Below are positions 10,531-45,777 of a stretch of DNA of 64,000 nt, piece by piece. Within the stretch, counting starts at the first letter, position 1. Each line of letters starts with the position of its first letter. The position numbers and the translations under genes were made by a program. The notes below the pieces were generated by a model, which had not been told where the DNA came from, made no database searches, and saw only the letters and a program-made list of their open reading frames with translations. Location of the stretch: contig NC_047062.1 in assembly GCF_902459465.1 (NCBI RefSeq), positions 3,906,001-3,970,000 of the forward strand, given 5' to 3'. Source of the stretch: Asterias rubens (lineage: Eukaryota).

Positions 10531-11607
10531 GCAGCTCAATGAAATTGGACCCTGGAACTTAGCTTCTAATTTTAACTTCAAAGAAAACATAAAACTTCAA
10601 AAGGTGGCTTTTGAGAAACTAAATGTTATCAGTTTTAAGATGACTTTTTATCGAACCGGCTTTTAAATAAAATTTTCTGCCAAATAACATTCAATCGGGC
10701 TTACAGAAAATGGGTTTATGGCATCTTAATATTTAACATATTCTTTATCAGTTAATATTGCAATTTTTCTTGCTAAATCTGCTTCAACATGATAACATAA
10801 CACTACTCAAATATATCACATTTTCATCTGTATAATTTCAAGAAATTGTGTAAAGTTTCTTAGATTAGTTTTTACATTGAGGTTATAGGCCTAACTGAAA
10901 TCCTTATTACCACTGATGAATTAATGGAAATTTTTTTTCTTGTAAAGTGTAGCCTCTTTAAAATTGCTAAACTACGCCCTACCAATCCTTGACTAATATG
11001 AGGATACATGTGAGATATATCATTTTGGAGAGCAATTCATTTGATGCAATAGGACAGCTGCTATAATGCAGAGTAATGTAATGGCAACTCATCTTCCTCT
11101 ATGTCCAGACTAGTGAAAATAATTGCCCTCCTGCAATAACCGCGATTGAGTTTGGAACTAATCGCCTGCGACATGCCTCCCCCATATATTTCAATACAAC
11201 CCCCCCCCCCCTCCCGCTTTGATTGCTCCAATGCCGATGAGCTGGGGCTCCATGTTATCATTTGACTGGATTTCAATGGATGCCTTTACTACCGATAATA
11301 ACCAATGTTTGTCTCAAATATATTGCCCTAATTTTTCTTCTCAATAAAGCGTATTTGTCACATCACAGCGCATTAACTATGGTGCGCATCTGTGTACTTC
11401 GGGTTAGACCCTAACACAGACTGACAAACGCATAGGAGGAGACAACCAAGCGTACCAAAACTAACATTTCATTGCCGATTATAAAGCAAGAGATTTTCCC
11501 ACCATGGAGAATTGTAGAAAAAGAACTACCAGACAAACAAGCAAACAAACAAATCATATAATATTTCTGTTCAATGAAAAGGTTTAATAATTGTTTAGAT
11601 TGTATTG

Positions 11608-11892
11608 TTAACTTTTTGGTTTTACCCATACACCCACATGTGTTAGCACTGTATTATCAGTACTTTCCCTGAGTTCTGTGAAAAAATATCACAGGCATGT
11701 TACTTGGTAGGGACTCAAACCCACGACCAGTGCAATTCTAGAGCAGTGTCTTACCAACCAGACCACCGAGATTGCCCGGTAGCTAGAGGCAGTTCAAATC
11801 CTATGTTTTGGCAGCGGGTACGACAACGAAATAATAGATGTTAAATTTGCATCGGGGATAAGAATATTCCTTTTGGTTTTACCATACACCGA
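11608..11892 (-). mobile_element. Terminally redundant retroposon with an internal tRNA-like sequence (family T2)
   Basis: 12-bp TSD tagattgtattg (11596-11607, 11893-11904); ~22-bp terminal direct repeat cttt(t)tggtttta(c)ccatacacc; minus-strand D arm GTCT-GGTTGGTA-AGAC and B box GGTTTGAGTCCC at ~11700-11771. Confidence 0.8.
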
Positions 11893-14495
11893 TAGATTGT
11901 ATTGGATTCTGTATGGGATTCGGTGATTTGTGTCATATGTTATGCATAAAAGTAGTCCAACATTAATTTACATCATTCTACCAAAATAATCATCCTGTAC
12001 TAAAAAAAAATATATATGTTTATGCTTAACCTACATGTCTGCTTCGTAGACCCATTTTTGTAAACATTAACTTGAGAAAATATTCAGCAATTCATCATAT
12101 TTTGTTTTCCCTTCATATCACTATATTATCACACCACTACACCACACACACACACGCACACTCACCAACAGATTAACATATTATATACAGATATAATAAA
12201 ATATAATACAAAACATTTTAGATGTAGCACACACTGCAGCACACTGGCCCGACACATCATCATAATATATCCCACGGTACATTTTTGATGAGTTTGACAT
12301 TTCAAGCACATGACCAACGACCCACTTTGCCTCAATAATTCATTATGTCAATTGCTCACAAATTGTTCTCATCCATGGTGGTGGCATAGTTGCTGCATGG
12401 GCGTACTGTTTGGTCGTTTACAAACCAGAGTTTAACTGATAATGAAGGGGGAGAGTCTAACAGCACCAATGTCGCTACCTTCTTTACAAAAATACACTTC
12501 GCCATTATCAATTTACAAATAGGTACGCACCTTGATGTATGTACAAAGTGTGCAAATGACAGGACAGTAACATGACACCCACATAAACTAATTTGCAAAT
12601 TACCTAAAAAGCAGCGGATAATAAATTATGTGGCATAGCCATTTTATTGTGCTGCTGTCACTGCAGCATTTACAATCCACCATGAACCAAACTGTGCATT
12701 AATTGGATCTAAGACACAATGCAGTTAAATTTGCAGAATATGTCAAAACCCAGACACAATGGTATAATATATTATGTCGATTCCTAAAATCGTTAAACTT
12801 CTATTGAAATTCTGAAATTCTAATTTAAAAACAAGTTCAATGACCACATTTTTATTAGAATATTTTTTTTTTTTGTATAATATTTTCTCTGACAGATGAT
12901 GCTGTTTCAAAATATATTTACATGTTTGCAAATATGCAATGCGGTCAATGCACAAAGTATATTATGTAAAACATGCAAAATTGTTGGTACATGGCTGATG
13001 GACTAGAGGCAATGTCGGGATTCATAGCCAGGTTTTTTTTTTCCAACTCCAAATCTTAATTTCTGGGACAAAGCTGCCCCCAAAATCTGACCTAGAGTCT
13101 ATGAAGTACCTAAAGTGGTTTCATTTTCAACTGGAAGTAGATCCCAAAGTTTAACGGTTTCTTGAGAATTGCAGCTGGTTTTTTTTTTGCTCCTTAATCA
13201 TCAGTTATACAACTGAACTATAATTATCATACAAATTTTAAAGTTGCATTTCAACAAAGAGCAAAATTGAACTAAAGGTACTGAACATGTTTTGGGTGAA
13301 TTTCACAATACATTTCGGGGGATTAAAACTATCTTTATACTATCGAAAGCTGATGTACATCTAAAGCAAGTAAGTTTTTATTGCCATTAATTTTAAGATT
13401 GATTACAAAATGTATACCTTCCCTTTAACAGATTCTGGAGTAATTGATTGGAAAGTCACTGCACCTTTGTCTCTCAAACCATCGCCATGGTTTATGAGCA
13501 GTAATCAGAGGAAGCATTTCTTCCGACCTACTAAATTTACTGATACATTCTTGAAGACATTCTGATCTTGATTTATATTTTTGTCTGATGATTTAAAGTT
13601 GCCTTAACAGTAAATTCCGTTTGACTGTACTTCTGATCCATTATGCTAACTCAAAAGAAATTGAGGACTTGAATTTTTTGTATTATAGCCACTGTACACT
13701 TTCCCTTTTCGTTAGAAGTATTTTTATTCTCAGGAGACATAAACAAGTTAAAATACATAATTATTCATCCCTTGAACATGCTACTATGAAATTATGCCGA
13801 AAATTATCCAGTAAAGGCCTGTACACATACCGATGCAAAATTGTGAGTTTTCTTGCTTCACAATTGAAAAACAGCGCGTAAAGATGTATAAATTCGCTCT
13901 GCATTCGCTTTCTTACATTGATTTTTGTGACGGTACTGGTATAATTTATGTCGGCAGATTTAAATAAAATTTCAATAAATGTGTCTTTCTATAGCTTCTT
14001 ATATTATTATTAGTTCATTTTTTAAAACATTCAAACTTGGCAGCCAGTAGCTGAATTGCGGTTACAATTACAGAGCATAAGAAAATATATATATACTATT
14101 TTAAAATTACAGAAAAACATTTAGAGATAAAAATATTTATTTAAGTACAAATATAAAATACAAGATGTTCAAACACTAAAATACAAAAATACTTTCCACT
14201 AGGGAGGCATAACACACCTCTTGCTAAAAACTCTAAACAATTAGGAAAACATGCAAGACACAACATGGACTACTAATTGGTTTGAAGAAAAGAGAGACAT
14301 ACTTTAAGACCTACATTGATGTAAATACAAACACAGTTAAATTGCTCTGAATTCACCTGTTAATTAATCCAATTAAAAACTGTCTGTGTAATTCATTAAC
14401 AGTCATACTGGAGACTTCTTGTGACTATATTTGTTTGATCTTTATTTATAAACTTAAGGTATTCAGCCTATAGTCCAGACTGGTTAGAAAGTATA

Positions 14496-15294
14496 TTAAA
14501 GGCTCGGAACACTATTGGTTATTTCTCAAAATAATCATAAGCAGAAAACTTTACTTGTATGGAGTAATGGAGGGAGGTTGATAGTATACAAATATTGACT
14601 GATTCGAGTGCTAGGTTAAAACTACGACTCCCTAGGTGATCCCTGGAGCGTTCTATTTTCCCGAGGCGCAGCCGAGGGGAAATGGAATGGTCCGGGGATT
14701 ACCGAGGGAGTCGGAGTTTTAACCATGGCACAAGTAAAAGCAGTCAATATTTGTTATATAACACCCCAACAGACTATTTATCATTCTCGTACACGTAGCG
14801 TTCGTACGTGTGTTTCAGATACACAGATGCACAACTGATTGGGTTCGAGGTGGGTAAAAAGACGTCTGGGTACTGTATGCCGTGTGATAGCCGTTGGACT
14901 ATCACATGGCAAACGATGCCCTAAGACATATCATGTGACGCGCTCTAAACTGATGAAAAGGCAGAATATTTGTAGGGGGTGTTATAATATAAAACATTGT
15001 GAGAAACAGCTCCATCTGAAGTGAAGTAGTTTTTGAGAATGAAGTAATTTGTCACTAAAATATTTGAATTTTATTTCGAGACCTCAGAATTAGATTTTGA
15101 GGTCTCAAAATCAAGCTTTCGAAAGCACACAACTTGTGCAACAAGGGCGTTGTTTTCTTCCATTATTCTCTTGCAACTTCGATGAACAATTGAGTTAAAA
15201 ATTTTCCCAGGTTTGTTATTTGATGCATATGTTCAGATACACCAAGTGAGAAGACTGGTCTTTGACAATTACAAATAGTGTCCAGTGTCTTTAA
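14496..15294. mobile_element. Family A MITE interrupted by a 399-bp insertion
   Basis: Both TTAA termini present; host sequence gatagtata|aaacattgtgag is split at 14588/14988 with tata duplicated. Confidence 0.85.
14589..14987. mobile_element. Composite foldback element (two adjacent hairpin modules)
   Basis: caaatattgactg...cagtcaatatttg (14589-14753) with long internal inverted arms, followed by tataacacccc...ggggtgttata (14757-14986). Confidence 0.75.
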
Positions 15295-17467
15295 TGCATA
15301 CTGTTGTGTAAACGGATTTCTAATCTAACTGTTAAGTCAAGCAATACAATACCAGCAACTAATTAATTGTATGCATCGAATATGTCATGACAAAAATCAC
15401 CCAGGGGTCTGTGTACTTTCGGAAAGCAATCTGTCTCCGAATGTTTCCATATTTTATAAGCATCTAGAGGAGTTCTGTGACAGATTGCTTTATTCATCAT
15501 GGGTTTATTCCATTGTGCTGTAGTCATGCAACAGGCATAGGCCGAATAGTCAAAATGTGTTTGTACTCTTTCAAATGCCAAGGAACAGCATTGGCCATTC
15601 AAAGATATACATGTATTCCTTATTTCCATGAAATTTGGGATTATCTTCCCATAGCGATTGGTGCTATAATTTATGATTTATGATGATGATTCAGCAAAAA
15701 GTCTGCTGAGCCTCCCCGAACCCCTTGAATTGGTTTTCTGCAAATGTACACACTTCCCATCCAATTATCATGTCTTCTGGAATTTATACCATCCAGATAA
15801 GCCTATGAAAACAGCATAATATAGCAACAATATATTTTGTTTTGTTTTATGAAGATTATTAGTTGGTTTTTATTTAGCATAACATCATGCCATTCCTCCC
15901 ATTTAAGGGGAAGACATTTTTAGTGGAAAGATTTTCTGGCGGGGGGGGGGGGGGGGCCTCCAATTTTGCCAGAGTAGACCACCAAAACAACTGGTATAAC
16001 AAAGAATTTGGTGAGAGAGCATTAGTTTGTAATAATAAGTTATGGTGTTTTAATTTCAATCACAATCATTGACTTGAGCTATTTGTTAATCTTGCCTACT
16101 CTTATAGACGCAAAATGCTAAGTTGGAGGTTACTGGTGCTTTGGCTGTAAGTCACTTCTACATAAAGTATTTAAAGCTGTCCGCGATCAAGTTTTCATTT
16201 TCATTATTTAAAAAAAAAATGTGCACCTTTTTTAGATGATACTGAAAAGGTTATTTTCTATTTATAGTGATCTCCTTAGATCCTTCTTGAAGAATTAGGT
16301 TTGAAAGGAAAAAGTTATTCAATCTAACCGGAGCAGCATAACTTTTAAGACATGTTTTAGCTTCTTCAATCAAGATTTGATATGAAAACATGTTGACACA
16401 GCGCCATTTTTCGAATTTAATATTTCACTGAATTTGGAACATGATTCCGGGCCTATAATGTCACGACACACGCGTGACTGCTTCACCAGTCTAGGGGGGG
16501 AAGGAGGAAAAAAAAATACATGCACGCTTGGTTGTATCATTGAAAACTCAACCCCTGGGGACCTCAGAAAAGCCCAATAAAATTGGATTTAGCAAATGCC
16601 ACCTTATTATTGCAGGGTTCCCAGAATGTACTAATCTGATTTTGTGGCTCATTCAAGAGTCCAGTGTGGGTGGGGGGGGGGGGCTCAGCCAAAGATCAGA
16701 CATGGTAGTTTTTCAGACACGATTCAAACCTTATTATTACTGTCTGCAAAAGCCTGGCTGTTGGTTTACTAGCTTTCTATAATTTCTGTCCTTCAAAGGG
16801 AAAGTTCATTGTTGTATTATGAAGAGTGCAATCATGCCAATCCTATTTTTTTTTTTGACACTAAAACCTGACAAATTTTCTAAACAATTTAAGCTTGTGC
16901 TTATTTCTCTGGCGAGGTGAGGTACGCAAAATAAGATCACACCCAAAATCAAGCTCCTTGAAATCAAAGCTGTCTTAGTACATCCTCCAATAAGACATTA
17001 CCTGACCTTTTCAATCCATACTTGAAAACAAGTTGTTCCCTACCCTGTACTAGCCAAAACTCCCCAGGATGAAGCTGCCCCAACTAAACCAAAACCACGA
17101 CTAGTTAATCTGTAGTATTTAAACACCCCATGTTTGGACTCGAATACTAATATTCTTTTGCCTAGCCTCTATATAAGACAGTGGGTGATTTGAGAGTGCA
17201 ACATCAAATCCATGAAGTTCAAGCAGTGACATTTAAGGGACTTGACACAATACAATTTTCAGATGAAATCATGAACCTGGGCACTGCTGTGTTTATTAGC
17301 TAGTTATGGATAGCCACTACACAGAAGGCGAATTCAGGGAGACGCTGATTTCTATCTCTAATATGATACTTCTAATGATAGGATGACTAGCAGCATGATA
17401 GGAATAAAAGAAAACCTAGTAGTTTTAATCTAAAGCAACACTAAAATGTTATAACTTTGTGGCTTTT

Positions 17468-17735
17468 CTTGGCTGAGCGAATACTGATCAGCAGAGTGTG
17501 GGTTAGAGTCCCAGTTGTGGCACTTGCGTTCTCGAGCAAGATACTTGATTCGTCCCTCGGATAGGGTATTAAGCCGTCCGTCTCATGTACATACTAGGAT
17601 TGGTAGCACATGTAAAAGAACCCAGGACATTTATCGTAAAAGAGAAGGGGGTTTACCCACTTTTATGAGGCAGCCTTGGTTTTATTACCAGAAATACATA
17701 ATAGCAATTATTTACCCCAAATGTACAGAACTTAT
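17468..17735 (+). mobile_element. tRNA-derived SINE (family S1)
   Basis: A box tggctgagcg, B box ggttagagtcc, body cacttgcgttctcgagcaagatacttg...gtaaaagaaccc; homologous to 3757-3915. Confidence 0.7.
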
Positions 17736-18351
17736 TTCCCCCCATCAGGAAACAATAATGTATATTGAGGACATACCCTCTCTCACATTATAAAGACAAT
17801 TCGACTTTGTGAAAGGCTTTAATTCCTGCATGCACAGTTCTAGACTCATTGATTAACTGTACCTTTCCAACCTTCTTCTGAAAAACAATCCTGCCCCCCA
17901 AAAAAAATTCAATGAACGATTTTACCACAGCACACTGCACCTCCGTATAATAATAAAAAAGGGAGAGCTTTCTTAATGACAATTTCATTCCCCCCTTGAG
18001 CGTATTGGACAAAGGAGCGAGCTCAGAAAATGTCATGCTCAGAGGCGGGGGGAAAAATGGTCTAAAGAATGCCCCTAAGTTATGTCACCCACGTGTTCCG
18101 TGTTCTGAGTACACAACACCGCGGCTGGAGAATTAAGCCGGTGAAGTGGGGGTTCTCATCATGGTGACATCACGGCCCCAGATGGGGGGTTGTGAAGGGG
18201 GCCCCTTGGCATCTCCACGTCATCCAAGTCCGCAGTGTAAATTAATCTTACTCTGTCAACTCCCTCCGCATCTTCAAAATGCTAACCTCTCAATCTTGTT
18301 GTTACAACAGAAATACCCAAATATGGCAATTTATTACAGGACTGGCAAGTT

Positions 18352-18720: not shown

Positions 18721-18811
18721 ACTAAATACACTGGTTTAGAAAAACACGAGCATTGTGCGAAAATAAACACACGTTGATGGTGTTTTGTTAATGTGTCTCA
18801 TTTTGGTTAAC

Positions 18812-26770: not shown

Positions 26771-28675
26771 GGGTTTCCAACTGGACAAGAAGGGGCTTCA
26801 CACAGAATCGTCAGGTTATCCCACTACCCGATACCCAATCTTGGTGAGACGGGCTTCACATAGAATCCTCAGGTTATCCCACTACCCGATACCCAACTGG
26901 GCGAGAGAGAGAGGGGCTTCACATAGAATCGTCAGGTTATTCCACTATACCGATACCCAACTGGGCGAGAGAGAGAGGGGCTTCACATAGAATCGTCAGG
27001 TTATTCTACTATACCGATACCCAACTGGGCGAGAGAGAGGGGCTTCACATAGAATCGTCAGGTTATCCCACTACCCGATACCCAACTGGGCGAGAGAGAG
27101 AGGGGCTTCACATAGAATCGTCAGGTTATTCCACTATACCGATACCCAACTGGGCGAGAGAGAGGGGCTTCACATAGAATCGTCAGGTTATCCCACTACC
27201 CGATACCCAACTGGGCGAGAGAGAGGGGCTTCACACAGAATCGTCAGGTTATTCCACTATACCGATACCCAATCTTGGTGAGACGGGCTTCACATAGAAT
27301 CTTCAGGTTATCCCACTACCCGATACCCAATCTTGGTTAGAAGGGCTTCACATAGAATCGTCAGGTTATCCCACTACCCGATACCCAATCTTGGTTAGAC
27401 GGGCTTCACATAGAATCCTCAGGTTATCCGACTACCCGATACCCAACTGGGCGAGAGAGAGAGGGGCTTTCACATAGAATCGTCAGGTTATTCTACTATA
27501 ACGATACCCAACTGGGCGAGAGAGAGAGAGGGGCTTCACATAGAATCGTCAGGTTATTCTACTATACCGATACCCAACTGGGCGAGAGAGAGAGGGGCTT
27601 CACATAGAATCGTCAGATTATCCCACTACCCGATACCCAACTGGGCGAGAGAGAGGGGCTTCACACAGAATCGTCAGGTTATTCCACTTTACCGATACCC
27701 AATCTTGGTGAGACGGGCTTCACATAGAATCTTCAGGTTGTCCCACTACCCGATACCCAATCTTGGTTAGAAGGGCTCATATAGAATCGTCAGGTTATCC
27801 CACTACCCGATACCCAACTGGGCGAGAGAGAGAGGGGCTTTCACATAGAATCGTCAGGCTATCCCACTACCCGATACCCAATCTTGGTGAGACGGGCTTC
27901 ACATAGAATCGTCAGGTTATCCCACTACCTGATACCCAACTGGGCGAGAGAGAGGGGCTTCACATAGAATCGTAAGGTTATTCCACTATACCGATACCCA
28001 ACTGGACGAGAGAGAGAGAGGGGCTTCACATAGAATAGTCAGGTTATCCCACTACCCGATACCCAACTGGGCGAGAGAGAGGGGCTTCACACAGAATCGT
28101 CAGGTTATTCCACTATACCGATACCCAATCTTGGTGAGACGTGCTTCACATAGAATCGTCAGGTTATCCCACTACCCGATACCCAATCTTGGTTAGACAG
28201 GCTTCACACAGAATCCTCAGGTTATCCGACTACCCGATACCCAACTGGGCGAGAGAGAGAGGGGCTTCACATAGAATCGTCAGGTTATTCCACTATACCG
28301 ATACCCAACTGGGCGAGAGAAAGAGGGGCTTCGCATAGAATCGTCAGGTTATTCTACTATACCGATACCCAACTGGGCGAGAGAGAGGGGCTTCACATAG
28401 AATCGTCAGGTTATTCCACTATACCGATACCCAATCTTGGTGAGACGGACTTCACATAGAATCGTCAGGTTATCCCACTACCCGATACCCAACTGGGCGA
28501 GAGAGAGGGGCTTCACATAGAATCGTCAGGTTATCCCACTACCCGATACCCAACTGGGCGAGAGAGAGGGGCTTCACACAGAATCGTCAGGTTATTCCAC
28601 TATACCAATACCCAATCTTGGTGAGACGTGCTTCACATAGAATTGTCAGGTTATCCCATTTGCCGGACACCCAAT
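26771..28675. repeat. Minisatellite, ~53-62 bp unit, roughly 30-35 copies, with interspersed variants
   Basis: Core gggcttcacatagaatcgtcaggttatcccactacccgatacccaa followed by either ctgggc(ga)n or tcttggtgagac/tcttggttaga. Confidence 0.95.
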
Positions 28676-30312: not shown

Positions 30313-30981
30313 AATGAATAGGGTAGATGGCCTTAGCTTTCGATCCAATCCGGACCTTCTTCAGAGGCATAAAACAAGTACAAACAAATACATATCCATT
30401 TATAGAAAAAAAGAGGGGGAAAGGGATTAAGGAAAGGATCCAGAAAGAAGCGGGAAAATAACAGCCAATCAAAGTTCCTATTTCAGAAACAATATTGGTG
30501 GCTATGAACCAATAGGAGTGAAGTGGCGAGGACAAAGGATGTTTAGAATGAAAGGAAGGGTTACTGGACCATAAAAGTGGTAAATGTATTGTTCGACAAC
30601 AATGCAGGGAGACATGAAAGGGTAGGATTAGAGAGCAAGTTGCATCATGATGCAACTAACAATGGTCAATTAATAAGAATAGCAAGATCAAAGGTATGAT
30701 GATTTTAAAAATAAGTATGAGGGACCTGTGGAGAAAAAGGGGGGGTTACTTATATCAGATAGTTACAGTGATGAATTTATAAAAACAACTTTAAACTAGG
30801 TTAATTTATACTTTATGTACAAAATATATACAACATATAAGTTCTTAGGCAGAAGTGAAGTGGAGGGTAATGAGAAGTTATTTAACACCAGTGTTTATGT
30901 TAAGTCCAAAGGGTTTGACTGTCTTGAGTTGGTGAATCCAGTGTGATTCTCTATTCTTGCGGTGTGTGTCATCACCATTGC
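30313..30981 (-). mobile_element. Penelope-like element 3' fragment (pLTR-sized), copy 1
   Basis: Contains a GIY-YIG C-terminal peptide, 3' UTR and hammerhead; flanked by (AT)8 at 30297-30312 and 30983-30998; ~98% identical (by eye) to 39430-40100. Confidence 0.88.
30327..30370 (-). ncRNA. Minimal type I hammerhead ribozyme (dimer-type), copy 1
   Basis: Minus strand AUGCCU-CUGAAGA-A-GGUCC-GGAUU-GGAUC-GAA-AGCU-A|AGG(C)CAU: stem I, core, stem II and palindromic stem III AGCU. Predicted cleavage between 30334 and 30333. Confidence 0.85.
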
Positions 30982-30982
30982 A
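30878..30982 (-). pseudogene. C-terminal fragment of a Penelope-like GIY-YIG endonuclease
   Basis: CNGDDTHRKNRESHWIHQLKTVKPFGLNINTGVK*, matching the R..RE..WI..L.T..P.GLN motif of PLE endonucleases. Confidence 0.85.
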
Positions 30983-31005
30983 ATATATATATATATATTA
31001 AAAAA

Positions 31006-34000
31006 TGGCTTCTGACAGGCACCCCCGAACAAAGATATTGACAAAATTGGGAGACCACCAACATAGGGCTAGATAGCTCAGTTGGTAGAGCGCCGGCACG
31101 TTAAACCGGAGGTCGTTGGTTCAAATCCCGCTCTAGTCAATTTTCTTTGTTCAATCCAAAATCATTTAAAAAAAATGTTCCCAGTCAGTTTCCCTTGTGG
31201 TTTATTATTTGATATCTGATATAAAAAAGTCGCATCCCCTTAAGGTGATCCCCTGTCTGCCGCTTCCCAGGTTGTATCGTTACCCGGGTGTGATCCCTGG
31301 CTACACGGCAGTTTGCGGTTTAATGGCTTCTGACAGGCACCCCCGAACAAAGATATTGACAAAATTGGGAGACCACCAACATAGGGCTAGATAGCTCAGT
31401 TGGTAGAGCGCCGGCACGTTAAACCGGAGGTCGTTGGTTCAAATCCCGCTCTAGTCAATTTTCTTTGTTCAATCCAAAATCATTTAAAAAAAATGTTCCC
31501 AGTCAGTTTCCCTTGTGGTTTATTATTTGATATCTGATATAAAAAAGTCGCATCCCCTTAAGGTGATCCCCTGTCTGCCGCTTCCCAGGTTGTATCGTTA
31601 CCCGGGTGTGATCCCTGGCTACACGGCAGTTTGCGGTTTAATGGCTTCTGACAGGCACCCCCGAACAAAGATATTGACAAAATTGGGAGACCACCAACAT
31701 AGGGCTAGATAGCTCAGTTGGTAGAGCGCCGGCACGTTAAACCGGAGGTCGTTGGTTCAAATCCCGCTCTAGTCAATTTTCTTTGTTCAATCCAAAATCA
31801 TTTAAAAAAAATGTTCCCAGTCAGTTTCCCTTGTGGTTTATTATTTGATATCTGATATAAAAAAGTCGCATCCCCTTAAGGTGATCCCCTGTCTGCCGCT
31901 TCCCAGGTTGTATCGTTACCCGGGTGTGATCCCTGGCTACACGGCAGTTTGCGGTTTAATGGCTTCTGACAGGCACCCCCGAACAAAGATATTGACAAAA
32001 TTGGGAGACCACCAACATAGGGCTAGATAGCTCAGTTGGTAGAGCGCCGGCACGTTAAACCGGAGGTCGTTGGTTCAAATCCCGCTCTAGTCAATTTTCT
32101 TTGTTCAATCCAAAATCATTTAAAAAAAATGTTCCCAGTCAGTTTCCCTTGTGGTTTATTATTTGATATCTGATATAAAAAAGTCGCATCCCCTTAAGGT
32201 GATCCCCTGTCTGCCGCTTCCCAGGTTGTATCGTTACCCGGGTGTGATCCCTGGCTACACGGCAGTTTGCGGTTTAATGGCTTCTGACAGGCACCCCCGA
32301 ACAAAGATATTGACAAAATTGGGAGACCACCAACATAGGGCTAGATAGCTCAGTTGGTAGAGCGCCGGCACGTTAAACCGGAGGTCGTTGGTTCAAATCC
32401 CGCTCTAGTCAATTTTCTTTGTTCAATCCAAAATCATTTAAAAAAAATGTTCCCAGTCAGTTTCCCTTGTGGTTTATTATTTGATATCTGATATAAAAAA
32501 GTCGCATCCCCTTAAGGTGATCCCCTGTCTGCCGCTTCCCAGGTTGTATCGTTACCCGGGTGTGATCCCTGGCTACACGGCAGTTTGCGGTTTAATGGCT
32601 TCTGACAGGCACCCCCGAACAAAGATATTGACAAAATTGGGAGACCACCAACATAGGGCTAGATAGCTCAGTTGGTAGAGCGCCGGCACGTTAAACCGGA
32701 GGTCGTTGGTTCAAATCCCGCTCTAGTCAATTTTCTTTGTTCAATCCAAAATCATTTAAAAAAAATGTTCCCAGTCAGTTTCCCTTGTGGTTTATTATTT
32801 GATATCTGATATAAAAAAGTCGCATCCCCTTAAGGTGATCCCCTGTCTGCCGCTTCCCAGGTTGTATCGTTACCCGGGTGTGATCCCTGGCTACACGGCA
32901 GTTTGCGGTTTAATGGCTTCTGACAGGCACCCCCGAACAAAGATATTGACAAAATTGGGAGACCACCAACATAGGGCTAGATAGCTCAGTTGGTAGAGCG
33001 CCGGCACGTTAAACCGGAGGTCGTTGGTTCAAATCCCGCTCTAGTCAATTTTCTTTGTTCAATCCAAAATCATTTAAAAAAAATGTTCCCAGTCAGTTTC
33101 CCTTGTGGTTTATTATTTGATATCTGATATAAAAAAGTCGCATCCCCTTAAGGTGATCCCCTGTCTGCCGCTTCCCAGGTTGTATCGTTACCCGGGTGTG
33201 ATCCCTGGCTACACGGCAGTTTGCGGTTTAATGGCTTCTGACAGGCACCCCCGAACAAAGATATTGACAAAATTGGGAGACCACCAACATAGGGCTAGAT
33301 AGCTCAGTTGGTAGAGCGCCGGCACGTTAAACCGGAGGTCGTTGGTTCAAATCCCGCTCTAGTCAATTTTCTTTGTTCAATCCAAAATCATTTAAAAAAA
33401 ATGTTCCCAGTCAGTTTCCCTTGTGGTTTATTATTTGATATCTGATATAAAAAAGTCGCATCCCCTTAAGGTGATCCCCTGTCTGCCGCTTCCCAGGTTG
33501 TATCGTTACCCGGGTGTGATCCCTGGCTACACGGCAGTTTGCGGTTTAATGGCTTCTGACAGGCACCCCCGAACAAAGATATTGACAAAATTGGGAGACC
33601 ACCAACATAGGGCTAGATAGCTCAGTTGGTAGAGCGCCGGCACGTTAAACCGGAGGTCGTTGGTTCAAATCCCGCTCTAGTCAATTTTCTTTGTTCAATC
33701 CAAAATCATTTAAAAAAAATGTTCCCAGTCAGTTTCCCTTGTGGTTTATTATTTGATATCTGATATAAAAAAGTCGCATCCCCTTAAGGTGATCCCCTGT
33801 CTGCCGCTTCCCAGGTTGTATCGTTACCCGGGTGTGATCCCTGGCTACACGGCAGTTTGCGGTTTAATGGCTTCTGACAGGCACCCCCGAACAAAGATAT
33901 TGACAAAATTGGGAGACCACCAACATAGGGCTAGATAGCTCAGTTGGTAGAGCGCCGGCACGTTAAACCGGAGGTCGTTGGTTCAAATCCCGCTCTAGTC

Positions 34001-34713
34001 AATTTTCTTTGTTCAATCCAAAATCATTTAAAAAAAATGTTCCCAGTCAGTTTCCCTTGTGGTTTATTATTTGATATCTGATATAAAAAAGTCGCATCCC
34101 CTTAAGGTGATCCCCTGTCTGCCGCTTCCCAGGTTGTATCGTTACCCGGGTGTGATCCCTGGCTACACGGCAGTTTGCGGTTTAATGGCTTCTGACAGGC
34201 ACCCCCGAACAAAGATATTGACAAAATTGGGAGACCACCAACATAGGGCTAGATAGCTCAGTTGGTAGAGCGCCGGCACGTTAAACCGGAGGTCGTTGGT
34301 TCAAATCCCGCTCTAGTCAATTTTCTTTGTTCAATCCAAAATCATTTAAAAAAAATGTTCCCAGTCAGTTTCCCTTGTGGTTTATTATTTGATATCTGAT
34401 ATAAAAAAGTCGCATCCCCTTAAGGTGATCCCCTGTCTGCCGCTTCCCAGGTTGTATCGTTACCCGGGTGTGATCCCTGGCTACACGGCAGTTTGCGGTT
34501 TAATGGCTTCTGACAGGCACCCCCGAACAAAGATATTGACAAAATTGGGAGACCACCAACATAGGGCTAGATAGCTCAGTTGGTAGAGCGCCGGCACGTT
34601 AAACCGGAGGTCGTTGGTTCAAATCCCGCTCTAGTCAATTTTCTTTGTTCAATCCAAAATCATTTAAAAAAAATGTTCCCAGTCAGTTTCCCTTGTGGTT
34701 TATTATTTGATAT
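31006..34713 (+). repeat. Tandem array of a 318-bp tRNA-containing unit (11 full copies + 210 bp; family T1)
   Basis: Unit starts tggcttctgacagg at 31006+318k (k=0-11); no differences seen between copies; flanked by tatatatatattaaaaaa at 30988-31005 and 34714-34731. Confidence 0.97.
31067..31139 (+). ncRNA. tRNA-like cloverleaf, 73 nt, nominal GTT anticodon, probably non-decoding; 12 copies at +318-bp intervals (last 34565-34637)
   Basis: Acceptor GGCTAGA/TCTAGTC, D arm GCTC/GAGC, A box TAGCTCAGTTGG, B box GGTTCAAATCC, TTTT 2 nt downstream. Atypical A32/C33, C31-A39 and T51-C63 mismatches. Confidence 0.8.
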
Positions 34714-35854
34714 TATATATATATTAAAAAAAATATAAAAAAATTATTATTTTAATTTTATGAAAAAGGGTTATTTTAAATGATCTCAGCTAAAACAATC
34801 TGCATGTCTTGTCTGAATGTCTTTACCAAAATGTTTTATTTATGTATTGTGTGTTTGAGCAGTAGAAAAAAAAATGGATATTTGACATCTTAAAAAGAAT
34901 AAAAAGCCCCTCCTCCTTCCTTTTTTGAGAAACCCGGACACTAAACATGTTTCTTTTTTTACTCGGCCCTACTCTTGCAAAGGTGGCACAACAAATGAAG
35001 CATGAAATTGGGCAACTATGAATTGTTTTCCGCCTGATAAATTTTCCTTACTAACAAAGAGTTAAAAGCTGACGCAAGATCACAACTAAAGATACCATTA
35101 TCCCATCATGCAAACCTATGACCGCAATAACTTCAGCTATTCATTCCTCCCTTCACATATTTATGTCCCTCTGATAACTGTTATTCTACATAGTAGCTGC
35201 TAGCATTTTCTCATCGTTTGGCTCATGAACTTTGGACCGCCATCATGTACTTTATCCTTGCCACTATCCTGGAACAGTCACATCTGACTGTTAGGTGTAT
35301 TGACAGAACTAGTACACTCTCACTGAATAAACACACTTGCAATGGACAAACCCTGTGTCAAATCCTCAGCATGTCACACGTAAGAGGCCACCTATAGCAA
35401 GGCATTAAATCTACCTCCCTTAGTTCCCCTTACAGCAATTTTTGGAATACCTTTTGCTCTGATAATTTACCTTTTTTCAGTGGGGGGGTGTCCAATAGAT
35501 CGGTAATGACGTCATGAGCACTGCATTTGTTTTTGTATATGAACTCTAAATAAACTTGAGGTCCGTGTGTTTTGTTTTCTTAAGGAACACATGCAGGATC
35601 AAACTGTGAATGCATTAACATTTGTGGCTTAATTTATATACCTAGAGGCCTTCATAAAATGATGCAAGAAGGATGCCTTTCTGGATTTTGATGGGGAGTG
35701 GCAAGGGGGAGGGGGGCAAAACCTAATATGGCTCTGCTCCAACCCCAACCCAAACTTGTGAACACTGCATCATTACGTTGGTTTTCCTCCTTACAAAATA
35801 CACACCATCTAAACAAGGCTAGAAGCACCTTCGGGGATACATTTTCGTTCACAC

Positions 35855-37130: not shown

Positions 37131-37302
37131 TCATAGTCATAGACTTTGAACCAATTTTGTATAAGAGAGATGGGCTATAACTAGCCCTGGCGGCCTTACA
37201 CTTTCGTATTATACTACAGTGACGTCCTGGATATCAGGGTCCATTTCTGGGACAGAAAATTTTCAAAGCGTCATAACTCAAGTCTTACCTGCAAGAAACC
37301 AG

Positions 37303-37740: not shown

Positions 37741-38987
37741 GCGGGTACGCATCTGTTGGAAATATCCAAATACAACTGAAGGCCATGCACCATCTGCATT
37801 AGTGAATGGCTTTATATCTGTGTAACATATTTTGCTAAATGCTCTCTACTCTTCAATGAGGCAGTAATTAAAAAAATGTTGTGCTGCAATTAATGGACGT
37901 TGTTAAGTAATCCAATTAAAGTTCTATTGGTGAATATTTAGCCTTCGAGAAAAACTCTACCTGGGTCGAAACTTCAGGCCATTAACTATTTTTTGCGTGA
38001 ATATCTAAATAAACATTTTGTACTTAGTACTTTAGATATTCTGGGTTGGTAATTACTTTTTTTTGAATGTCATCAAAATCTAGAAAACAGCATTTCAAGA
38101 CCCCCAAATAATCATTGGTTATTTCAGTTGCCACAATATAAACAAGCACAAATGTGCACAACATCCCTTGCAGAACATAAGCGCTATTTTCTTCTCATTT
38201 TTTTTTTTACACTGAAACAAGGCTACCTTGAAAACATACTCTTACAAAAAAAACCAAAAGAAAAAAAAAAACCAACCCCCCAAAACAAGAAAACAAAACA
38301 GTAATGTAATTTAATCACCGGTAAGTCAACCACAGGACTTTTTCTACAGACCAAGTAGGCTTCTAATGCATTCAGAATAAATAATTGTATTCTCATAAAG
38401 ATGATAACAACCAAGCTATAAAATTTGTCTTTCTAATCAAAACAAAAAATAAACACATGATTGAAAATAACTCATTGTAATTAATGAAGGTGAAGTACTA
38501 GTTACAGTGATATAGTATACCAGATGCTATTGTCAGATATGAACATTATTATTATTTAACATACCCGATGCAAAAACCAAATGTAGAATATAATGAGTTT
38601 AACTGAATGTAAGCATTTATTGTTTAAGATCTCTCACTGTATTTACCTTTAAAACACAGTTGTAAAGTCAATTGGAAGTTTGCACTGGATAATTTAAATG
38701 ATACCTAATCATACATCATTAAAATTTAAGCAACTGTGGATCATAAATCTGTGATCAATTTTAGGCAGAAATTACAAGGAACTGCAAAGGGTACTGATAT
38801 TGGTGGCCTGTGTTTTTCACTAGTATAGAACAAATTTAATTACACTTCAATACATGTGAAAGCCATTTCACGAAGGGATTTACACAAAAAGCTTTCACCG
38901 CTTAGTTTACTATCATAAACCAGTACGATTGAACTAGACATCAAATGATCCTGAGTAGAACATTGCAGAACAAAAACATACACATTT

Positions 38988-39355
38988 TTAAGGGTCTATG
39001 GACTTTTTGTAGGACAAAAAAAACATAATGTCCACAGATTTACATTAAACTTACACAGTTTGAAGATAATGATAGTAGAAAGCTTCCCTGAAAATATTAC
39101 TTGCCTAGGTGCTGTAGTTTTTGAGAAATGAGTAAAACAATGTCAAGAAAATAATTTTTGTCTCAGTGATCATGAGACAAAAATTTGTTTAGTATGTAAA
39201 AACGTATTTTCATGAAATTGTTTTACTCATTTCTCAAAAACTACAGCACCTCAGCAAGTAATATTTTCAGGAAAGCTTTCTACTAAAGTAAGTTTAATGT
39301 AAATCTGTGGACGCTGTGTTTTGTGTTACAAAAAGTACCTCAAACCATTTTGATT
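38988..39355. mobile_element. TTAA-flanked Kolobok/T2-type MITE (family C), largely palindromic
   Basis: ttaagggtctatggactttttgt...; long arms gtagaaagcttccctgaaaatattacttg / caagtaatattttcaggaaagctttctac. Confidence 0.8.
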
Positions 39356-39429
39356 AATTTTTGTTCAAGGTGCGTAAATTTCATTCACAGTGCAATCAAA
39401 ATGTGATATATTTAATGATCATATATATT

Positions 39430-40100
39430 AATGAATAGGGTAGATGGCCTTAGCTTTCGATCCAATCCGGACCTTCTTCAGAGGCATAAAACAAGTACAA
39501 ACAAATACATATCCATTTATAGAAAAAGAGAGGGGGAAAGGGATTAAGGAAAGGATCCAGAAAGAAGCGGGAAAATAACAGCCAATCAAAGTTCCTATTT
39601 CAGAAACAATATTGGTGGCTATGAACCAATAGGAGTGGAGTGGCGAGGACAAAGGATGTTTAGAATGAAAGGAAGGGTTACTGGACCATAAAAGTGGTAA
39701 AAGTATTGTTCGACAACAATGCAGGGAGACATGAACGGGTAGGATTAGAGAGCAAGTTGCATCATGATGCAACTAACAATGGTCAATTAATAAGAATAGC
39801 AAGATCAAAGGTATGATGATTTTAAAAATAGGTATGAGGGACCTGTGGAAAAAAGGGGGGGGGGTTACTTACATCAGATAGTTACAGTGATGAATTTATA
39901 AAAACAACTTTAAACTAGGTTAATTTATACTTTATGTACAGAATATATACAACATATAAGTTCTTAGGCAGAAGTGAAGTGGAGGGTAATGAGAAGTTAT
40001 TTAACACCAGTGTTTATGTTAAGTCCAAAGGGTTTGACTGTCTTGAGTTGGTGAATCCAGTGTGATTCTCTACTCTTGCGGTGTGTGTCATCACCATTGC
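39430..40100 (-). mobile_element. Penelope-like element 3' fragment (pLTR-sized), copy 2
   Basis: 12-bp TSD atcatatatatt (39418-39429, 40101-40112); same ends as 30313-30981. Confidence 0.9.
39444..39487 (-). ncRNA. Minimal type I hammerhead ribozyme, copy 2
   Basis: Identical to 30327-30370. Confidence 0.85.
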
Positions 40101-40101
40101 A
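39997..40101 (-). pseudogene. C-terminal fragment of a Penelope-like GIY-YIG endonuclease, copy 2
   Basis: CNGDDTHRKSRESHWIHQLKTVKPFGLNINTGVK*. Confidence 0.85.
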
Positions 40102-41265
40102 TCATATATATTGATATATCATTTTGACTCACATAATTTTGTTACAATAATAAAAACTACTAATCTTGGTACCAATCTTAATCGCAAGCCATTCCAAGAT
40201 TCAAGATTTACAAGAGACTAACCGAGCTTCATCTGAGGTTTCCAAGAAAATTGAAAATTACATCTCTCACTGCTGATTGGTTTCCCTCTTTTACGACATC
40301 ATAAAATATCCATCTCACAGGCATGACAAAAATGCCTTGAAATCATTTCATGGAAAATAGTCTAAGCAATCTGTACAGATGACTTTGCGCAGGAAAAACC
40401 TATTTATGCTTTGTACCACACAGAATTCCAACACCCATCCCAATTACCAAGTGCTCAAAAATATTACATCAATACAGAAAGCGTAATGGAAACCCACAAC
40501 TGAGTGGGATGCATAGAAATTTTGTTATTGGCAACACAATCGAGAAATGCGTACGCACTGGGTAGCTTAGATAATGGCCTACACTAAGGTTGATTCCGTT
40601 GCTAGGGTATTGTGGAACAGCCTGCCTGCGTTTTTCATGACTAATGGCTCCATATTTTGTTACATGAATTTCAATGACATATTTGGTTCCAAATATTGTA
40701 ACCCCTGCCATTCAAGGAAGATTCTATGACTCAGGAAATAATATGAAATGACAATCCAAATAATCCAGGGGCCTAACGGTTTATAGTTTCTCCCCCCCCC
40801 CCCCTGGTTTCTTCAAAACAAAAACAGGATGGAGTTTTAAAAATCAGTTACTTCTAATGGCCAAATAAATGTTTTGATGTCGTTTTAAAAATATCCTGTT
40901 GTCGCTTTTTCGAGAGAGTATACAGCAAAATATTGTAACTTTGAAAACGCAAACAATGTGCTCGGTGAAACGTATTACCTATGCTTTCATATGAGTGCTG
41001 GTACTTCATAAGAATTTCAAATAATGCAATTACATCAATTTCATTTAAAGGATCTGACCATGTAAAAAGGTCCTCTTGTTGCTGAAGGAGCAGACAATTA
41101 TTAAGGCCTTTGATTTGTAGAGATAAATTAAAATGAAATTCAATTACCCTTATTTCAATTAACAATTGATAAACTACATGTTCATGTGTAGATGTTTACA
41201 GAACTTTTGCTATTTCCCTGAAACATAAACTGTTGGCTACGAGAGAGTTTAACAAGAACAATTGT

Positions 41266-41640
41266 TTAAAGCCATTGGACCCTTTCGGTAAACAGTGTTG
41301 TCCAAGGCCCACACTTTGTGTACCACAACTTCTATATCAAATAACAAACCTGTGAAAATTTAGGCTCAATCGGTCATCGGAGTCGGGAGAAAACAACGGA
41401 AAACCCCACCCTTGTTTCCGCGCGTTTCGCCGTGTCATGACATGTGTTTAAAATAAATCTGTAATTCTCGTTAACGAGAGTTTATATTGTTTTGCTGTTT
41501 TCTAAAAAAGTAAAGCATTTCATGGAATAATATTTCAAGAGAAGTCTTTCACCATTGCCTTCTGTAAACCCTGTAAGTTATTTGTAAATCTGTGAACTTT
41601 TTTTTTTTTTTTTTGAACCGAAAGGGTCCAATGGCTTTAA
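41266..41640. mobile_element. Family B MITE with perfect termini
   Basis: ttaaagccattggaccctttcggt / accgaaagggtccaatggctttaa (24-bp perfect, including TTAA). Confidence 0.92.
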
Positions 41641-42842
41641 CTTATTTTATACGTCTTTGAAATCATTACATTTGCATCAAGGAATTGGCGACTTCACACT
41701 ACAAAATATGACTAAGGGTTGAGATAAAGTGTAAACTACCCACAAATTTCAAAAGTAAATAATTCTTTCTGATGACAAGTCGTCGAATAAGTGGATATTG
41801 GATAGCTTCATGTGGCCGCACTTAATTGTCACTATTTAGATGTACAGCTAACGTGTGGTATTATGCGTCATCTTTGAATCATACACAGTAAATATACACT
41901 ATTAATAATAGACCGGAACACGGCCACGAGGCTGGAACCATCCATAATATGGAGAATTTGAGAAAAACCAAGAAATGAAATGATAATAAAAATAACGAGC
42001 TGAGAAGCCTGTCTCTATACACACAGGGCCAAACCTCATCAGCAAGTTTTTGTGTTTTCTACTAAACTGACAATGGCAGGACCAGATGTTACAAGTACGT
42101 CACAGAAATGAATGCTATGACTCAATCAACTGTTTTAATAACAGCCAAAGCCAACTGGTAGATGTATCATACATAACAAAAAGAAGAAGAAAAAAACCCT
42201 GAATCTACGCTGCTATGGCTATGAGTAGAGAGTGAAGGCCAGCAAAATCACTGACTGGTTGATTTGCAATGAGTCAGTACCCTTGTAGTACTAAATGAAT
42301 TTCCATACAGACAACTCTCCTCGTTATATTCCTCAACCGAGGTAACTTTAGGGAGAAAGCTAAACACCATGACATGACTAAGCCAAACGTAATATCCTTT
42401 TAATGAACTTCTACATGAAACAAGATTGATGGTCCAAATTAAATGAGGCAAACAGGAGCGTTATTAAGGGGTTTCGTGGGATAGCGGTTTGGGAGGGTAC
42501 ATACAATGATGACATTATACTCTTATAATTTGTATTGCCGATATAACAGATGATGTGACACATTCCATTACTATTATCCTCGTTCAAACTCAAGTCAGTC
42601 AAAAACAGTTTGTTTAAACCTTTACCAAGAAGCTCCACCCCCCCCCCCACCTCCATTCAGTCAGGTGCCCCATATACGTAACTGCATAAATAAGTTCTTA
42701 TTATCATACACGGAATGGCACCAGACAAGTTCCTCATCCATCATTTGAGTTTTGAAAAATAACCAGACAGCCATTTTGTTTTATCTTCATGTCAAAACAA
42801 TTTTCAATGGCCCAAAACTTTGACCCAGGTAGAGTCTTTCTA

Positions 42843-43228
42843 CGAGGTTAGAAAGCTTGAGCTTGAGCTTCCCTTCAAATAATTACTAACTAAGGTTCTG
42901 TAGTTTTTTGAGAAATGAGTAAGACAAGTCACAAAATATTTTTTGTCTCAGTGAGACGAAAATTATTTTAGCATGTAAAAACCCATTAACCAGTTCTGAT
43001 ATTATACCATAAACATAGCAAAACTGGTTAGGCCTAATACATTTTTACATGCTAAAACTGAGACCAAAAACTATTAGTTTTACTCATTTCTCAAAAACTA
43101 CAGCACATCAGCAAGTAAAATTTAAAGGAAAGCTTTCTAATATCATTATCTTCAAACTGTGTAAGTTTAATGTAACTCTGCGGACATTGTACACAGACCA
43201 TAGACCAAAAGTACATAGACCATTTAAC
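42843..43228. mobile_element. Family C MITE, left terminus missing
   Basis: Arms match 38988-39355; ends aaagtacatagaccatttaa. Confidence 0.75.
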
Positions 43229-44974
43229 CATTAGGTCTCAGCATCATTATAAATACACAGCTGGGACAGAAAGTGAAGTAGGCTTCCTAATTGGGGAATT
43301 GTTTTCTTCTTCTAAAATACACCATTATCACTGATAGAGATATAGCACACCTATTAATAAGTTCAGCAATTTCTCTTTCACAAATCTGTTTTTACATACT
43401 GAAACAATAATCAAAACATGTAACAATAACTCACACAGAAAGATTCAATTATCAATGAACAGATTGTTAATTTGTCTACCTAAAATATTTCCTAGTAAAA
43501 AATTGTTACTGGGCAAATCATCCTGAAAATGAAAGCAACTTCAATAAACGTCTAAATTTATCACCCCCCCCCCCCCAACAAAAAAAAAACAACAAAAAAC
43601 ATACTGTCCTCTTGAAAAATAAATACAGATACATAATCTTTCGAAGTTGTGCATCAAATAAAATTGAATGTCACAGATTACATTTAACATAAGAATCAGG
43701 AAAACTAGATCAAACACAGTGCATAACATCACTGTAACAGCAGCTCACCAATAAATTAATTTCAGACAATTTCCAACAGTGTTGTCCCTCTTCAAAATAT
43801 ACGGGCATCGCCAACAGAGGGGGCTGTGAGTGTACATGTACATGGCTAAATTACATGCAATGTTTTACCAACACATTGTGTTATAGATGTTTACACTGAA
43901 CCTTATTGGATGAAATGCAAACTTCAGCAGATAATAGATTGCAATGGCAAATTCTGGTACTGATGCTTATTTTTAAGTAGGTTATCCTAGCTGTTGTCCG
44001 ACTTACATGTTTATGCTTATTAACATTATGTTGTGAGGCTACCGTTTTGATAAATTATTTCCATACACATGACAGCATTTCAGATGGACAATAGACCCCT
44101 ACCATAAGTCGCCATCTATGATAAAACCGTCACGCATAAAAGGCTTTCACATGAGCACTTTTCCATTGTTTTATATCAAAGATGGTGATCAATGACGCCA
44201 TGTGCAATCCATATAGTTTTCCGTGACTTTGGGGTGTGCACCAATTGGCGCCTTAGTTGTCAATTTACTTTCTAGTAATTGTCTTCAAAGTTACAAGAAC
44301 AAGAGTCTTTAAAAAGACGATCGTTTACTAACAGTCCAACTTCGGTGTAGGACGCCGCTCTAAAAAAGGGCCCTTCAATTTTATCTTCTGCTTAATTATG
44401 CATTTTCCATCTCGACTAAAAATCGGCCCATTGCCAGTTGGATTTATCCTTCCCAGTTGACTCCATGAAATATGCAGTGTAAATCATCACCTCAAATTGA
44501 ATTGGTGATAATGTGCGACATTATGGAAATAACGCGATAAGCTGAGAAGTTTGGCCGACACTCTGAAGAAACTGAGTGTCTTCTTGTGCTTACTAAGGCG
44601 TGGGGGGAAGAAGGAAGGGGGGATGTAAGAAGTAAGAATATCCTATCGACCTATTGAGTCGTATTATCACCATCCACAGTCATCACATTGCGGACCAAAA
44701 TTTTTAATTAGTTTAGAGAGATGAGAAAACATTGGTTTAAGGCGGAACTATGCCCCCCAATCATCGGGTCATCGAAGAACATCAAAACCATATACTGAAT
44801 TGCGTTACCATGGGTGACCTGGTTTATGAAAAATAGAAAATGGTGAAAGACGGTCATGTTATTTATAAGTTTTTTTTTAGCCAAGGCACTTACATTGTCA
44901 AATTCAGTTTCTAATAGGTGAGAACATTACAACCCAGTTAGTTTTTTTTATTATTATAATTTTTGACATATTTG

Positions 44975-45265
44975 TTATTTTAAATGATTTGAGATTGAAC
45001 CCAAAACAAATTTACTGGAGTGAAAATTTGAACAAACGACCTCTGGATTAACAGGCCGGCGCTCTACCAACTAAGCTATCAGCCGTATGTTGGCAGCCTC
45101 TTTATGTAGTCAATTTCTTGGTTCAGGTTTCAGTCAAATCATACAACTGTTAATTGCCGTGCAGAAAGGAATCACAAGTTTATGGTGCAACCTGAAAAGC
45201 GGCAGCCAGGGTATCACCTTAAAGGGATGCGACTTTTTTATTTAAGATATCAAATAATATACCAC
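44975..45265 (-). mobile_element. Diverged dispersed monomer of the 318-bp T1 unit
   Basis: Minus strand: tgtggtatattatttgatatc...aaagtcgcatccctttaaggtgat...gatagcttagttggtagagcgccggcctgttaatccagaggtcg...aaatcatttaaaa. Homologous to the array unit but starting at a different phase; tRNA-like part ~45013-45085. Confidence 0.85.
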
Positions 45266-45777
45266 AGTTGGTTTCCCTTGTGGGGTATTAATTGATACCT
45301 TGTATATTTCAAACATAACAACCACAACTAGTACTTCTTGATGTTATTTGCACTGTGCTTATTTAACATTATGAGACTATGTTTTAAGGTACAGAAGCTG
45401 CCTTGAATACTTTCACACAAACTGATTTCAGTTGGTGAAACCAAATCAGGACTAGGCCCATTAATATTCATTATAGTTTTTAAAACAAAACATGGAAGCC
45501 AGTAAAAAGAAACTAAACCTGCAATTGAGACGTTTCTACATGGCTACTGATGGTTTCCCCTGTGTAACTCCGTAAAAGTCTCTGAAATATTTATGACGTG
45601 GAAACACTATCGGAAAGGTACATGAAATATGCAGGAAAATGTTATAGTCATCATCTATCCGTGCGTAAGGCTGGGAGACGTGTTTACTCCTACCAGACAG
45701 AAAGCTGAAAGTTTACAAATGCATAATGTAAACCAACATGAACAAAATCAAACGGGAGTTAATGTAATGTTTAAACA

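Follow-up and report, generated by a model that had tools for sequence, protein, structure and literature searches.

Hammerhead-free tandem retroposons with an internal tRNA-gene-like module in Asterias rubens and their probable insertion in the style of Penelope-like elements

Metazoan retrozymes without long terminal repeats (non-LTR retrozymes) consist of non-coding, low-GC units of ~300 bp that occur as dimers to long multimers, are bounded by target-site duplications (TSDs) of >4 bp and are linked to Penelope-like elements (PLEs) (Cervera & de la Pena, 2020, PMC7229834; Li et al., 2026, preprint 10.64898/2026.07.22.740005). Retrozymes are expressed as circular RNA of unit length, their defining trait is a type I hammerhead in every unit, and promoters are said to be absent (PMC7761336). 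PLEs in turn are recognized by frequent 5' truncation, partial tandems, an adjacent inverted and 5'-truncated copy and a bias for (TA)n (Craig et al., 2021, PMC8557442). Here we describe two repeat families, termed T1 and T2, from a stretch of 64,000 nucleotides of the starfish Asterias rubens (assembly GCF_902459465.1, contig NC_047062.1, positions 3,906,001 to 3,970,000), which is called the window in the following. Their units carry a complete tRNA-gene-like module and no hammerhead, and they are probably non-autonomous retroposons that are inserted through target-primed reverse transcription (TPRT) after the manner of PLEs, in the case of T1 by means of a PLE resident in the same genome.

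The original prediction had postulated three insertions from two families with a tRNA-like module in the interior of the unit, and this was confirmed by Tandem Repeats Finder (TRF), ARAGORN, Rfam and the TSDs. The features of the window that matter for the argument are the following.

31006 to 34713, forward strand: T1 array of 11.67 identical 318-bp units, starting at about unit position 1-3 and ending at unit position 212, the main 3' end of the family (...TTTGATAT)
30988 to 31005: left copy of the T1 TSD, 18 bp, TATATATATATTAAAAAA, at the (TA)n tail of PLE fragment 1, which lies upstream
34714 to 34731: right copy of the T1 TSD, an exact 18-bp match to the left copy
31067 to 31139 (first) to 34565-34637 (last), forward strand: tRNA-like modules of T1, twelve in total, one per 318 bp
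11608 to 11892, reverse strand: T2 copy of one unit plus about 22-28 nt, its 3' terminus being the main 3' end of the T2 family (...AAAACCAAAAAGTTAA)
11596 to 11607: left copy of the T2 TSD, exact 12 bp, TAGATTGTATTG
11893 to 11904: right copy of the T2 TSD, an exact 12-bp match to the left copy
about 11700 to 11772, reverse strand: degenerate tRNA-like module of this T2 copy, homologous to the 73-nt module of other T2 copies
44975 to 45266, reverse strand: old T1-like copy, 77-81% identical to T1
45252 to 45306, forward strand: small T1-like piece (unit positions 167-214) in inverted orientation, facing the old copy head-to-head
30313 to 30985, reverse strand: PLE fragment 1, 5'-truncated, comprising the final ~675 bp of the autonomous PLE that is resident in this genome
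30338 to 30364: hammerhead core CTGAAGA...CGAAA within PLE fragment 1
39421 to 40111, reverse strand: PLE fragment 2, a 5'-truncated 3' fragment, 97.8% identical to fragment 1

In the output of TRF, the T1 array is given as 11.7 copies of a 318-bp unit at 31004-34713, all matching (100%) and free of indels; owing to this perfect identity, the exact copy number depends on the quality of the assembly. Each of the twelve 73-nt modules, situated at unit positions 64-136, is called Asn-GTT by ARAGORN and reaches 54.3 bits in Rfam (gathering score 29), with one mismatched pair each in the anticodon stem and the T stem. In T2, the module occupies about unit positions 114-186; in copies other than that of the window it scores 42-48 bits as a tRNA and is read as Ser-AGA by ARAGORN. 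The predicted target duplications in two of the three insertions are indeed present, and the 18-bp duplication of T1, which lies in the (TA)n tail region of the PLE fragment at 30313-30985, also contains letters that do not belong to the microsatellite. No TSD was found in the flanks of the third insertion at 44975-45266. This insertion had been taken for a T1 monomer, and while it is T1-like, running from unit position 193 to an alternative 3' end at ~171, its divergence marks it as an old relative of T1 that is different from the young T1 family; a search for relatives of this copy found none above 80% identity. The adjacent piece at 45252-45306 is an inverted, 5'-truncated partner of the old copy in the style of PLEs.

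Searching the genome to which the window belongs, 417.6 Mb in size, gave 4462 T1 and 3850 T2 candidates at first look, and most of the large contigs hold many arrays. About 90 copies of both families elsewhere in the genome were examined; for T1, 39 loci were fetched and 47 arrays mapped, for T2, 38 loci with about 42-44 copies. Of the 47 T1 arrays, ~35 have their 3' end at unit position 212 (...GTGGTTTATTATTTGATAT) with (AT)n behind it, and seven others, the old copy in the window among them, have it at positions 158-171 (...AATCATTTA). The 5' ends are scattered over the whole unit without any significant cluster (scan statistic p = 0.26-0.41, 47 arrays), and lengths range smoothly from 1.1 to 11.7 units. 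Nearly every array is embedded in (TA)n on both sides. Within arrays, unit identity amounts to 99.84% and often to 100%, as against 96.6% between arrays, and subfamily variants are common to all units of one array. T1 arrays thus look as if they were born as arrays, and the homogeneity together with the array-wide variants indicates a bottleneck of a single unit. Several T1 5' junctions contain short duplicated element sequence as template jumps would give. A 280-deletion pattern in one array (L033) was considered as a sign of a dimeric template and rejected, as it sits in a C homopolymer.

T2 has a natural unit of ~248 bp, judged from the 38 fetched loci, with 3' ends at positions 27-38 (...CCAAAATTAAT) or 60-76 (...ACATCTATTAT) and lengths of 1.0-3.3 units. 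Its 5' ends are scattered as well, yet cluster at positions 214-245 (15/42, p = 0.006). The T2 duplications of 8-13 bp reside in non-repetitive A/T-rich DNA and are therefore unambiguous; over both families, TSDs range from 8 to 18 bp. The combination of a constant 3' end, variable 5' ends and TSDs of variable length points to TPRT. The permuted or terminally redundant ends emphasized in the original prediction are explained by TPRT from a fixed 3' site on a template of more than one unit, with scattered 5' ends, which is an ordinary signature of TPRT and PLEs. That the template exceeds one unit, as had been proposed, is borne out by the copy lengths of both families.

All of the PLE hallmarks listed in PMC8557442 were found, the (TA)n bias in T1 only. 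Both families exhibit a fixed 3' end with frequent 5' truncation as well as partial head-to-tail tandems, i.e. copies of 1.0-11.7 units bounded by single TSDs. Inverted, 5'-truncated copies in head-to-head arrangement exist as T1/T1 (L032, L038, L067) and T2/T2 pairs (L087, L095, L108), in which both members possess the canonical 3' end, and also as T1/PLE pairs (L047, L074). The target preference of the resident PLE is matched by T1 and not by T2, which is found at non-repetitive A/T-rich sites.

Both families are free of ribozymes. A regular expression for the hammerhead (CUGANGA...GAAA, with one core mismatch allowed) had no match on T1, T2 or the old copy when both strands were scanned, and Rfam at E<=10 revealed no ribozyme on T1 and T2. 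Rfam missed the minimal hammerhead of the PLE itself, and we therefore relied on the regular expression with that hammerhead as a positive control, which was detected.

The resident PLE is an autonomous, Neptune-type element of about 4.45 kb. It encodes a protein of 921 amino acids with an RVT_1 domain and, at its C-terminus, a GIY-YIG domain, and many of its reading frames are intact. Upstream of the GIY-YIG domain resides a CHKCTRSKCKTC linker of the CX2-5CxxC type that has been tied to microsatellite, i.e. (TA)n, bias in PLEs (PMC8557442). The genome contains 118 GIY-YIG matches, and 11 of the 12 loci fetched belong to this one PLE family. The 3' end of the element reads ...CUGAAGA-helix-CGAAA...CCCTATTCATT and is followed by (AT)n. 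(TA)n also serves as its target, and one copy at a non-repeat site is flanked by a TSD of ~16 bp. The element is apparently active. Independent 5'-truncated copies (30313-30985, 39421-40111 and one in the flank of L039) share the start TTGCAATGGTGATGACAC..., about 100 bp before the stop of the open reading frame, which points to a favoured stop or to an internal start and not so much to a non-autonomous unit of its own. In the 5' untranslated region of the PLE (L082:2998-3760), internal tandem repeats of roughly 190-330 bp are rich in TTTTCAG/TTTTCACAGG motifs. A 14-mer common to T2 and this repeated region was considered as a trace of homology and judged to be due to chance.

PLE fragments are present in the flanks of 18 out of 40 T1 loci and in none of 39 T2 loci (Fisher p = 6e-7). 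In two cases, a 5'-truncated T1 and a 5'-truncated PLE are joined head-to-head, with zero spacer in L047 and with a 4-nt spacer in L074. In L052, a T1 array ends at the non-canonical position 122 and continues into PLE positions 151-228 and then 4316-4451; this is a template-switch chimera that terminates in the PLE 3' end. Direct T1/PLE junctions are the expected trace that a single integration complex with two RNAs or a template switch would leave, and jointly with the chimera they indicate a shared reverse transcriptase (RT). The suggestion that Penelope-like copies provide the RT can be upheld for T1, for which the common target, the direct junctions and the chimera make the resident, recently active PLE the likely source. 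Recognition of T1 RNA by the PLE may need little beyond an ...AUAU site that pairs with nicked (TA)n. For T2, solely its insertion style suggests a partner that is PLE-like.

On the observed anatomy, the TSDs, the common target and the T1/PLE junctions we base the following proposal. A whole tRNA-gene-like module, made up of a 73-nt cloverleaf with a T-run behind it, is contained in the repeat unit of 318 bp in T1 and about 248 bp in T2, and new copies would be made by TPRT. Synthesis of cDNA would start at a fixed A/T-rich site of the RNA, which in T1 is ...UUUGAUAU and able to pair with the nicked (TA)n target, would then continue for more than one unit on a template without an effective end inside a unit and would stop at variable positions. 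Such a template could be a read-through multimeric transcript of existing arrays or a unit-length circle copied by rolling-circle reverse transcription; homologous switching, i.e. repeated homologous jumps on a terminally redundant RNA of 1.x units, is a further option. The product would be a head-to-tail multimer whose 3' end is constant while its 5' phase varies, with a non-integer number of copies and with a TSD, and no ribozyme would be involved in the route. What we infer here is which RT is at work, what kind of template it copies and whether the tRNA-like module plays any part.

Several points weigh against this proposal. Unequal exchange in place, following insertion of 1.x units, could also yield long homogeneous arrays. 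Much of the adjacency of T1 and PLE simply results from the common (TA)n target, and direct junctions amount to only three. BLAST of T1 and T2 against the resident PLE revealed no similarity beyond 11-14-mers, so that a shared 3' tail as in pairs of short and long interspersed elements (SINEs and LINEs) is lacking. T2 shows neither (TA)n targeting nor PLE neighbours (0/39). The samples consist of the best-scoring matches, 40 of several thousand candidates being scored per search, and are biased to copies of at least one unit. Finally, the RNA-seq libraries that were inspected are unstranded and contain mostly reads from diverged relatives, such that circles, multimers and DNA carry-over cannot be separated.

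It is conceivable that T1 and T2 are SINE-like elements mobilized by a LINE, that the arrays grew in place by unequal crossing-over or slippage and that the link to the PLE is a by-product of the (TA)n preference, but we regard this as unlikely. TSDs and 5' truncation are generic TPRT features, unequal exchange within an insertion of 1.x units would give homogeneous arrays in which the fractional part is retained, and the absence of PLE neighbours at T2 fits as well. However, old T2 copies bounded by TSDs exceed one unit too. Moreover, inverted partners retain canonical 3' ends, unlike the products of L1 twin priming, in which the inverted part starts internally. The direct head-to-head T1/PLE junctions and the chimera without any (TA)n spacer likewise speak against this alternative. 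The sampled copies have no poly(A) or LINE-like tail. As no genome-wide search for a LINE partner was made, the alternative may still hold for T2.

The original prediction assigned a central role to the cloverleaf, which was thought to act both as an RNA polymerase III (Pol III) promoter and as a cut site for RNase P and RNase Z, thereby producing unit-length linear or circular RNA for rolling-circle reverse transcription, with protein enzymes substituting for the hammerhead. We consider this distinctly improbable. A tRNA-like module of intact length does lie inside the unit of two unrelated families, and the uniform 5' phase, roughly geometric lengths and perfectly homogeneous arrays of T1 are what a circular template would give. 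In four raw RNA-seq runs of a related organism, T1-like reads occur at a depth similar to that of the PLE 3' end, and some of them cross the unit junction. On the other hand, there is no pile-up of 5' ends at tRNA position 1, there are no 3' ends at position 73, and no preferred starts or ends of molecules were seen in these four unstranded runs, all of which speaks against the cloverleaf as a cut site. Cuts on both sides would strip the tRNA from the template, yet all units retain the module. Cleavage by RNase P and RNase Z generates 5'-phosphate and 3'-OH termini, and RtcB ligase does not accept such ends. RtcB is the ligase used for retrozyme circles (PMC7229834). Folding of the T1 unit is not unusually stable, viroid-like folding not being significant (z = -1.1). 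The part of the claim that concerns a Pol III promoter of the whole unit fares no better: the module is followed by TTTT or TTTTT 5 nt downstream in T1 and by TTTTTT 13 nt downstream in T2, and these runs should halt Pol III. Since a terminator follows so closely, the cloverleaf looks like a self-contained Pol III gene rather than the promoter of a whole-unit transcript.

A more general version holds that the tRNA-like module is essential because host tRNA-processing enzymes or binding of TFIIIC/Pol III would make, out of read-through transcripts, endless templates or circles of unit length that are copied by the PLE RT in rolling-circle fashion. We would give this little credence. If true, the elements would be a ribozyme-free, protein-processed counterpart of retrozymes, and the hammerhead would be dispensable for tandem amplification of the PLE type.

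A DNA-level origin, be it as Helitron or Helentron, from reintegrated extrachromosomal circles, as a plain tandem tRNA cluster or as an assembly artefact, is extremely improbable: the AT dinucleotide targeted by Helitrons is present in the (TA)n flanks, the units are perfectly identical and a tRNA module with a T-run resembles a real tRNA gene, but 5' ends are variable, copy numbers non-integer and TSDs of 8-18 bp clear even in non-repetitive DNA, 3' ends read ...GATAT or ...TTAAT and neither 5'-TC nor CTRR-3' termini exist, one and the same 3' end is seen at dozens of loci spread over most large contigs, and reintegration of circles would leave no constant 3' end.

Retroposition by TPRT in PLE style thus being the preferred reading, the question arises of which described elements T1 and T2 resemble most. 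Retrozyme units are 150-450 bp long, low in GC and arranged in dispersed tandems, and so are those of T1 and T2 with 318 and about 248 bp. In contrast to retrozymes, T1 and T2 have no hammerhead and carry a tRNA-gene-like module where promoters are said to be missing. Vertebrate retrozymes are related in sequence to the pseudo-long terminal repeats (pLTRs) of PLEs, a similarity not found for T1 and T2. With PLE pLTR insertions (PMC8557442), our elements share 5' truncation, partial tandems, the inverted 5'-truncated partner and the (TA)n bias; they differ from PLEs in that they encode nothing, are 10-15 times shorter and yield up to about 12 units in one event instead of 1.x. The hammerhead-free PLEs reported in PMC8557442, Naiad, possess an N-terminal endonuclease, whereas here the partner PLE has a hammerhead and the passenger has none.

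The SINE-like schistosome repeats Sm-alpha and Sj-alpha are similar in that they are ~335-bp repeats that occur both in tandem and dispersed and contain a tRNA-like part (Ferbeyre et al., 1998, cited after PMC2770079 and PMC8490949); PMC2770079 mentions 2,342 'tRNA-Gln' calls by tRNA finders. Sm-alpha carries an active hammerhead. T1 and T2 contain none. We know of no report of a PLE partner or of (TA)n targeting for Sm-alpha.

Helenus/TRIMp3 (Kojima, 2024, PMC10886601) are small non-autonomous elements from several lineages with tRNA-like sequence in terminal direct repeats. Helenus is an LTR element with primer binding site, polypurine tract and TSDs of 4-5 bp; T1 and T2 have variable 5' ends and TSDs of 8-18 bp, T1 in addition (TA)n tails. 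TSD length and 5' ends thus set T1 and T2 apart from TRIMp3/Helenus, a specific search for primer binding site and polypurine tract not having been made. Classical tRNA-derived SINEs are comparable with regard to a tRNA module with A and B boxes, TSDs, a foreign RT and thousands of copies. As had been predicted, however, the sampled copies are unlike an ordinary SINE: no excess of their 5' ends is seen at the tRNA, a Pol III terminator lies directly behind it, and the copies exceed one unit and have no poly(A) or LINE-derived tail. The predicted dissimilarity to Helitrons is equally clear, as Helitrons and Helentrons have fixed 5'-TC/CTRR-3' termini and a 3' hairpin and insert at AT or TT without TSD, and T1 and T2 have variable 5' ends, other 3' ends and clear TSDs. 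In the way they work, T1 and T2 resemble retrozymes or PLE passengers, and they have neither the hammerhead of the former nor the tRNA-borne 5' start and tail of a classical SINE. In the literature searched, we found no description of hammerhead-free, tRNA-bearing tandem retroposons of PLE style. To speak of a new class, as was done in the original prediction, nevertheless goes too far, for the elements behave like PLE-dependent analogues of SINEs or retrozymes.

Some further observations concern the surroundings of the tRNA-like module. The sequence AACATAGG is found just upstream of it in both families (T1 positions 57-64, T2 positions 89-96), and a few 5' ends lie close by (T1 positions 53-58, T2 positions 88-92), possibly reflecting a minor Pol III start. 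For T1, a start at positions 53-58 was rejected (scan p = 0.26, not significant). The T1 leader ACAAAG...AAAAUUG is complementary to the trailer CAAUUUUCUUUGU and could enclose the module in a stem (31029-31150 of the window, positions 26-147), and a similar pairing, altered in places, seems to persist in the old copy at 44975-45266. The enclosing stem was also considered as a bulge-helix-bulge motif, which does not fit; T1 is too young and invariant for covariation. At one locus (L054:1082-1122), ~30 nt of unrelated sequence resembling an inverted tRNA T-arm fragment are inserted between (TA)n and the T1 5' end, which recalls the 30-40-bp 'tail' extension known from PLE insertions. Words of T1 are also found in runs from seawater and marine metatranscriptomes, and they carry four different organism labels. 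Several species therefore share the family, and environmental samples contain detectable RNA or DNA of it. Elsewhere in the window, 26777-28658 is taken up by a satellite-like array with a 58-bp unit repeated 30 times and a higher-order period of about 426-487 bp (86-88% matched), which is not related to T1 or T2.

The role of the hammerhead in PLEs and retrozymes and the origin of tandem and inverted PLE insertions are stated open questions (PMC8557442, PMC7761336). T1 and T2 suggest that short units are amplified in tandem owing to the PLE machinery when it acts on short RNAs, and not owing to the ribozyme, and that PLEs are able to support SINE-like parasites, a rarely documented partnership. 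For annotation, thousands of tRNA-finder matches in this genome are likely to represent elements of the T1/T2 type. The genome of A. rubens offers a natural system in which a young, abundant, hammerhead-free passenger, T1, forms up to ~12-mers next to an apparently active PLE with which it shares the (TA)n target.

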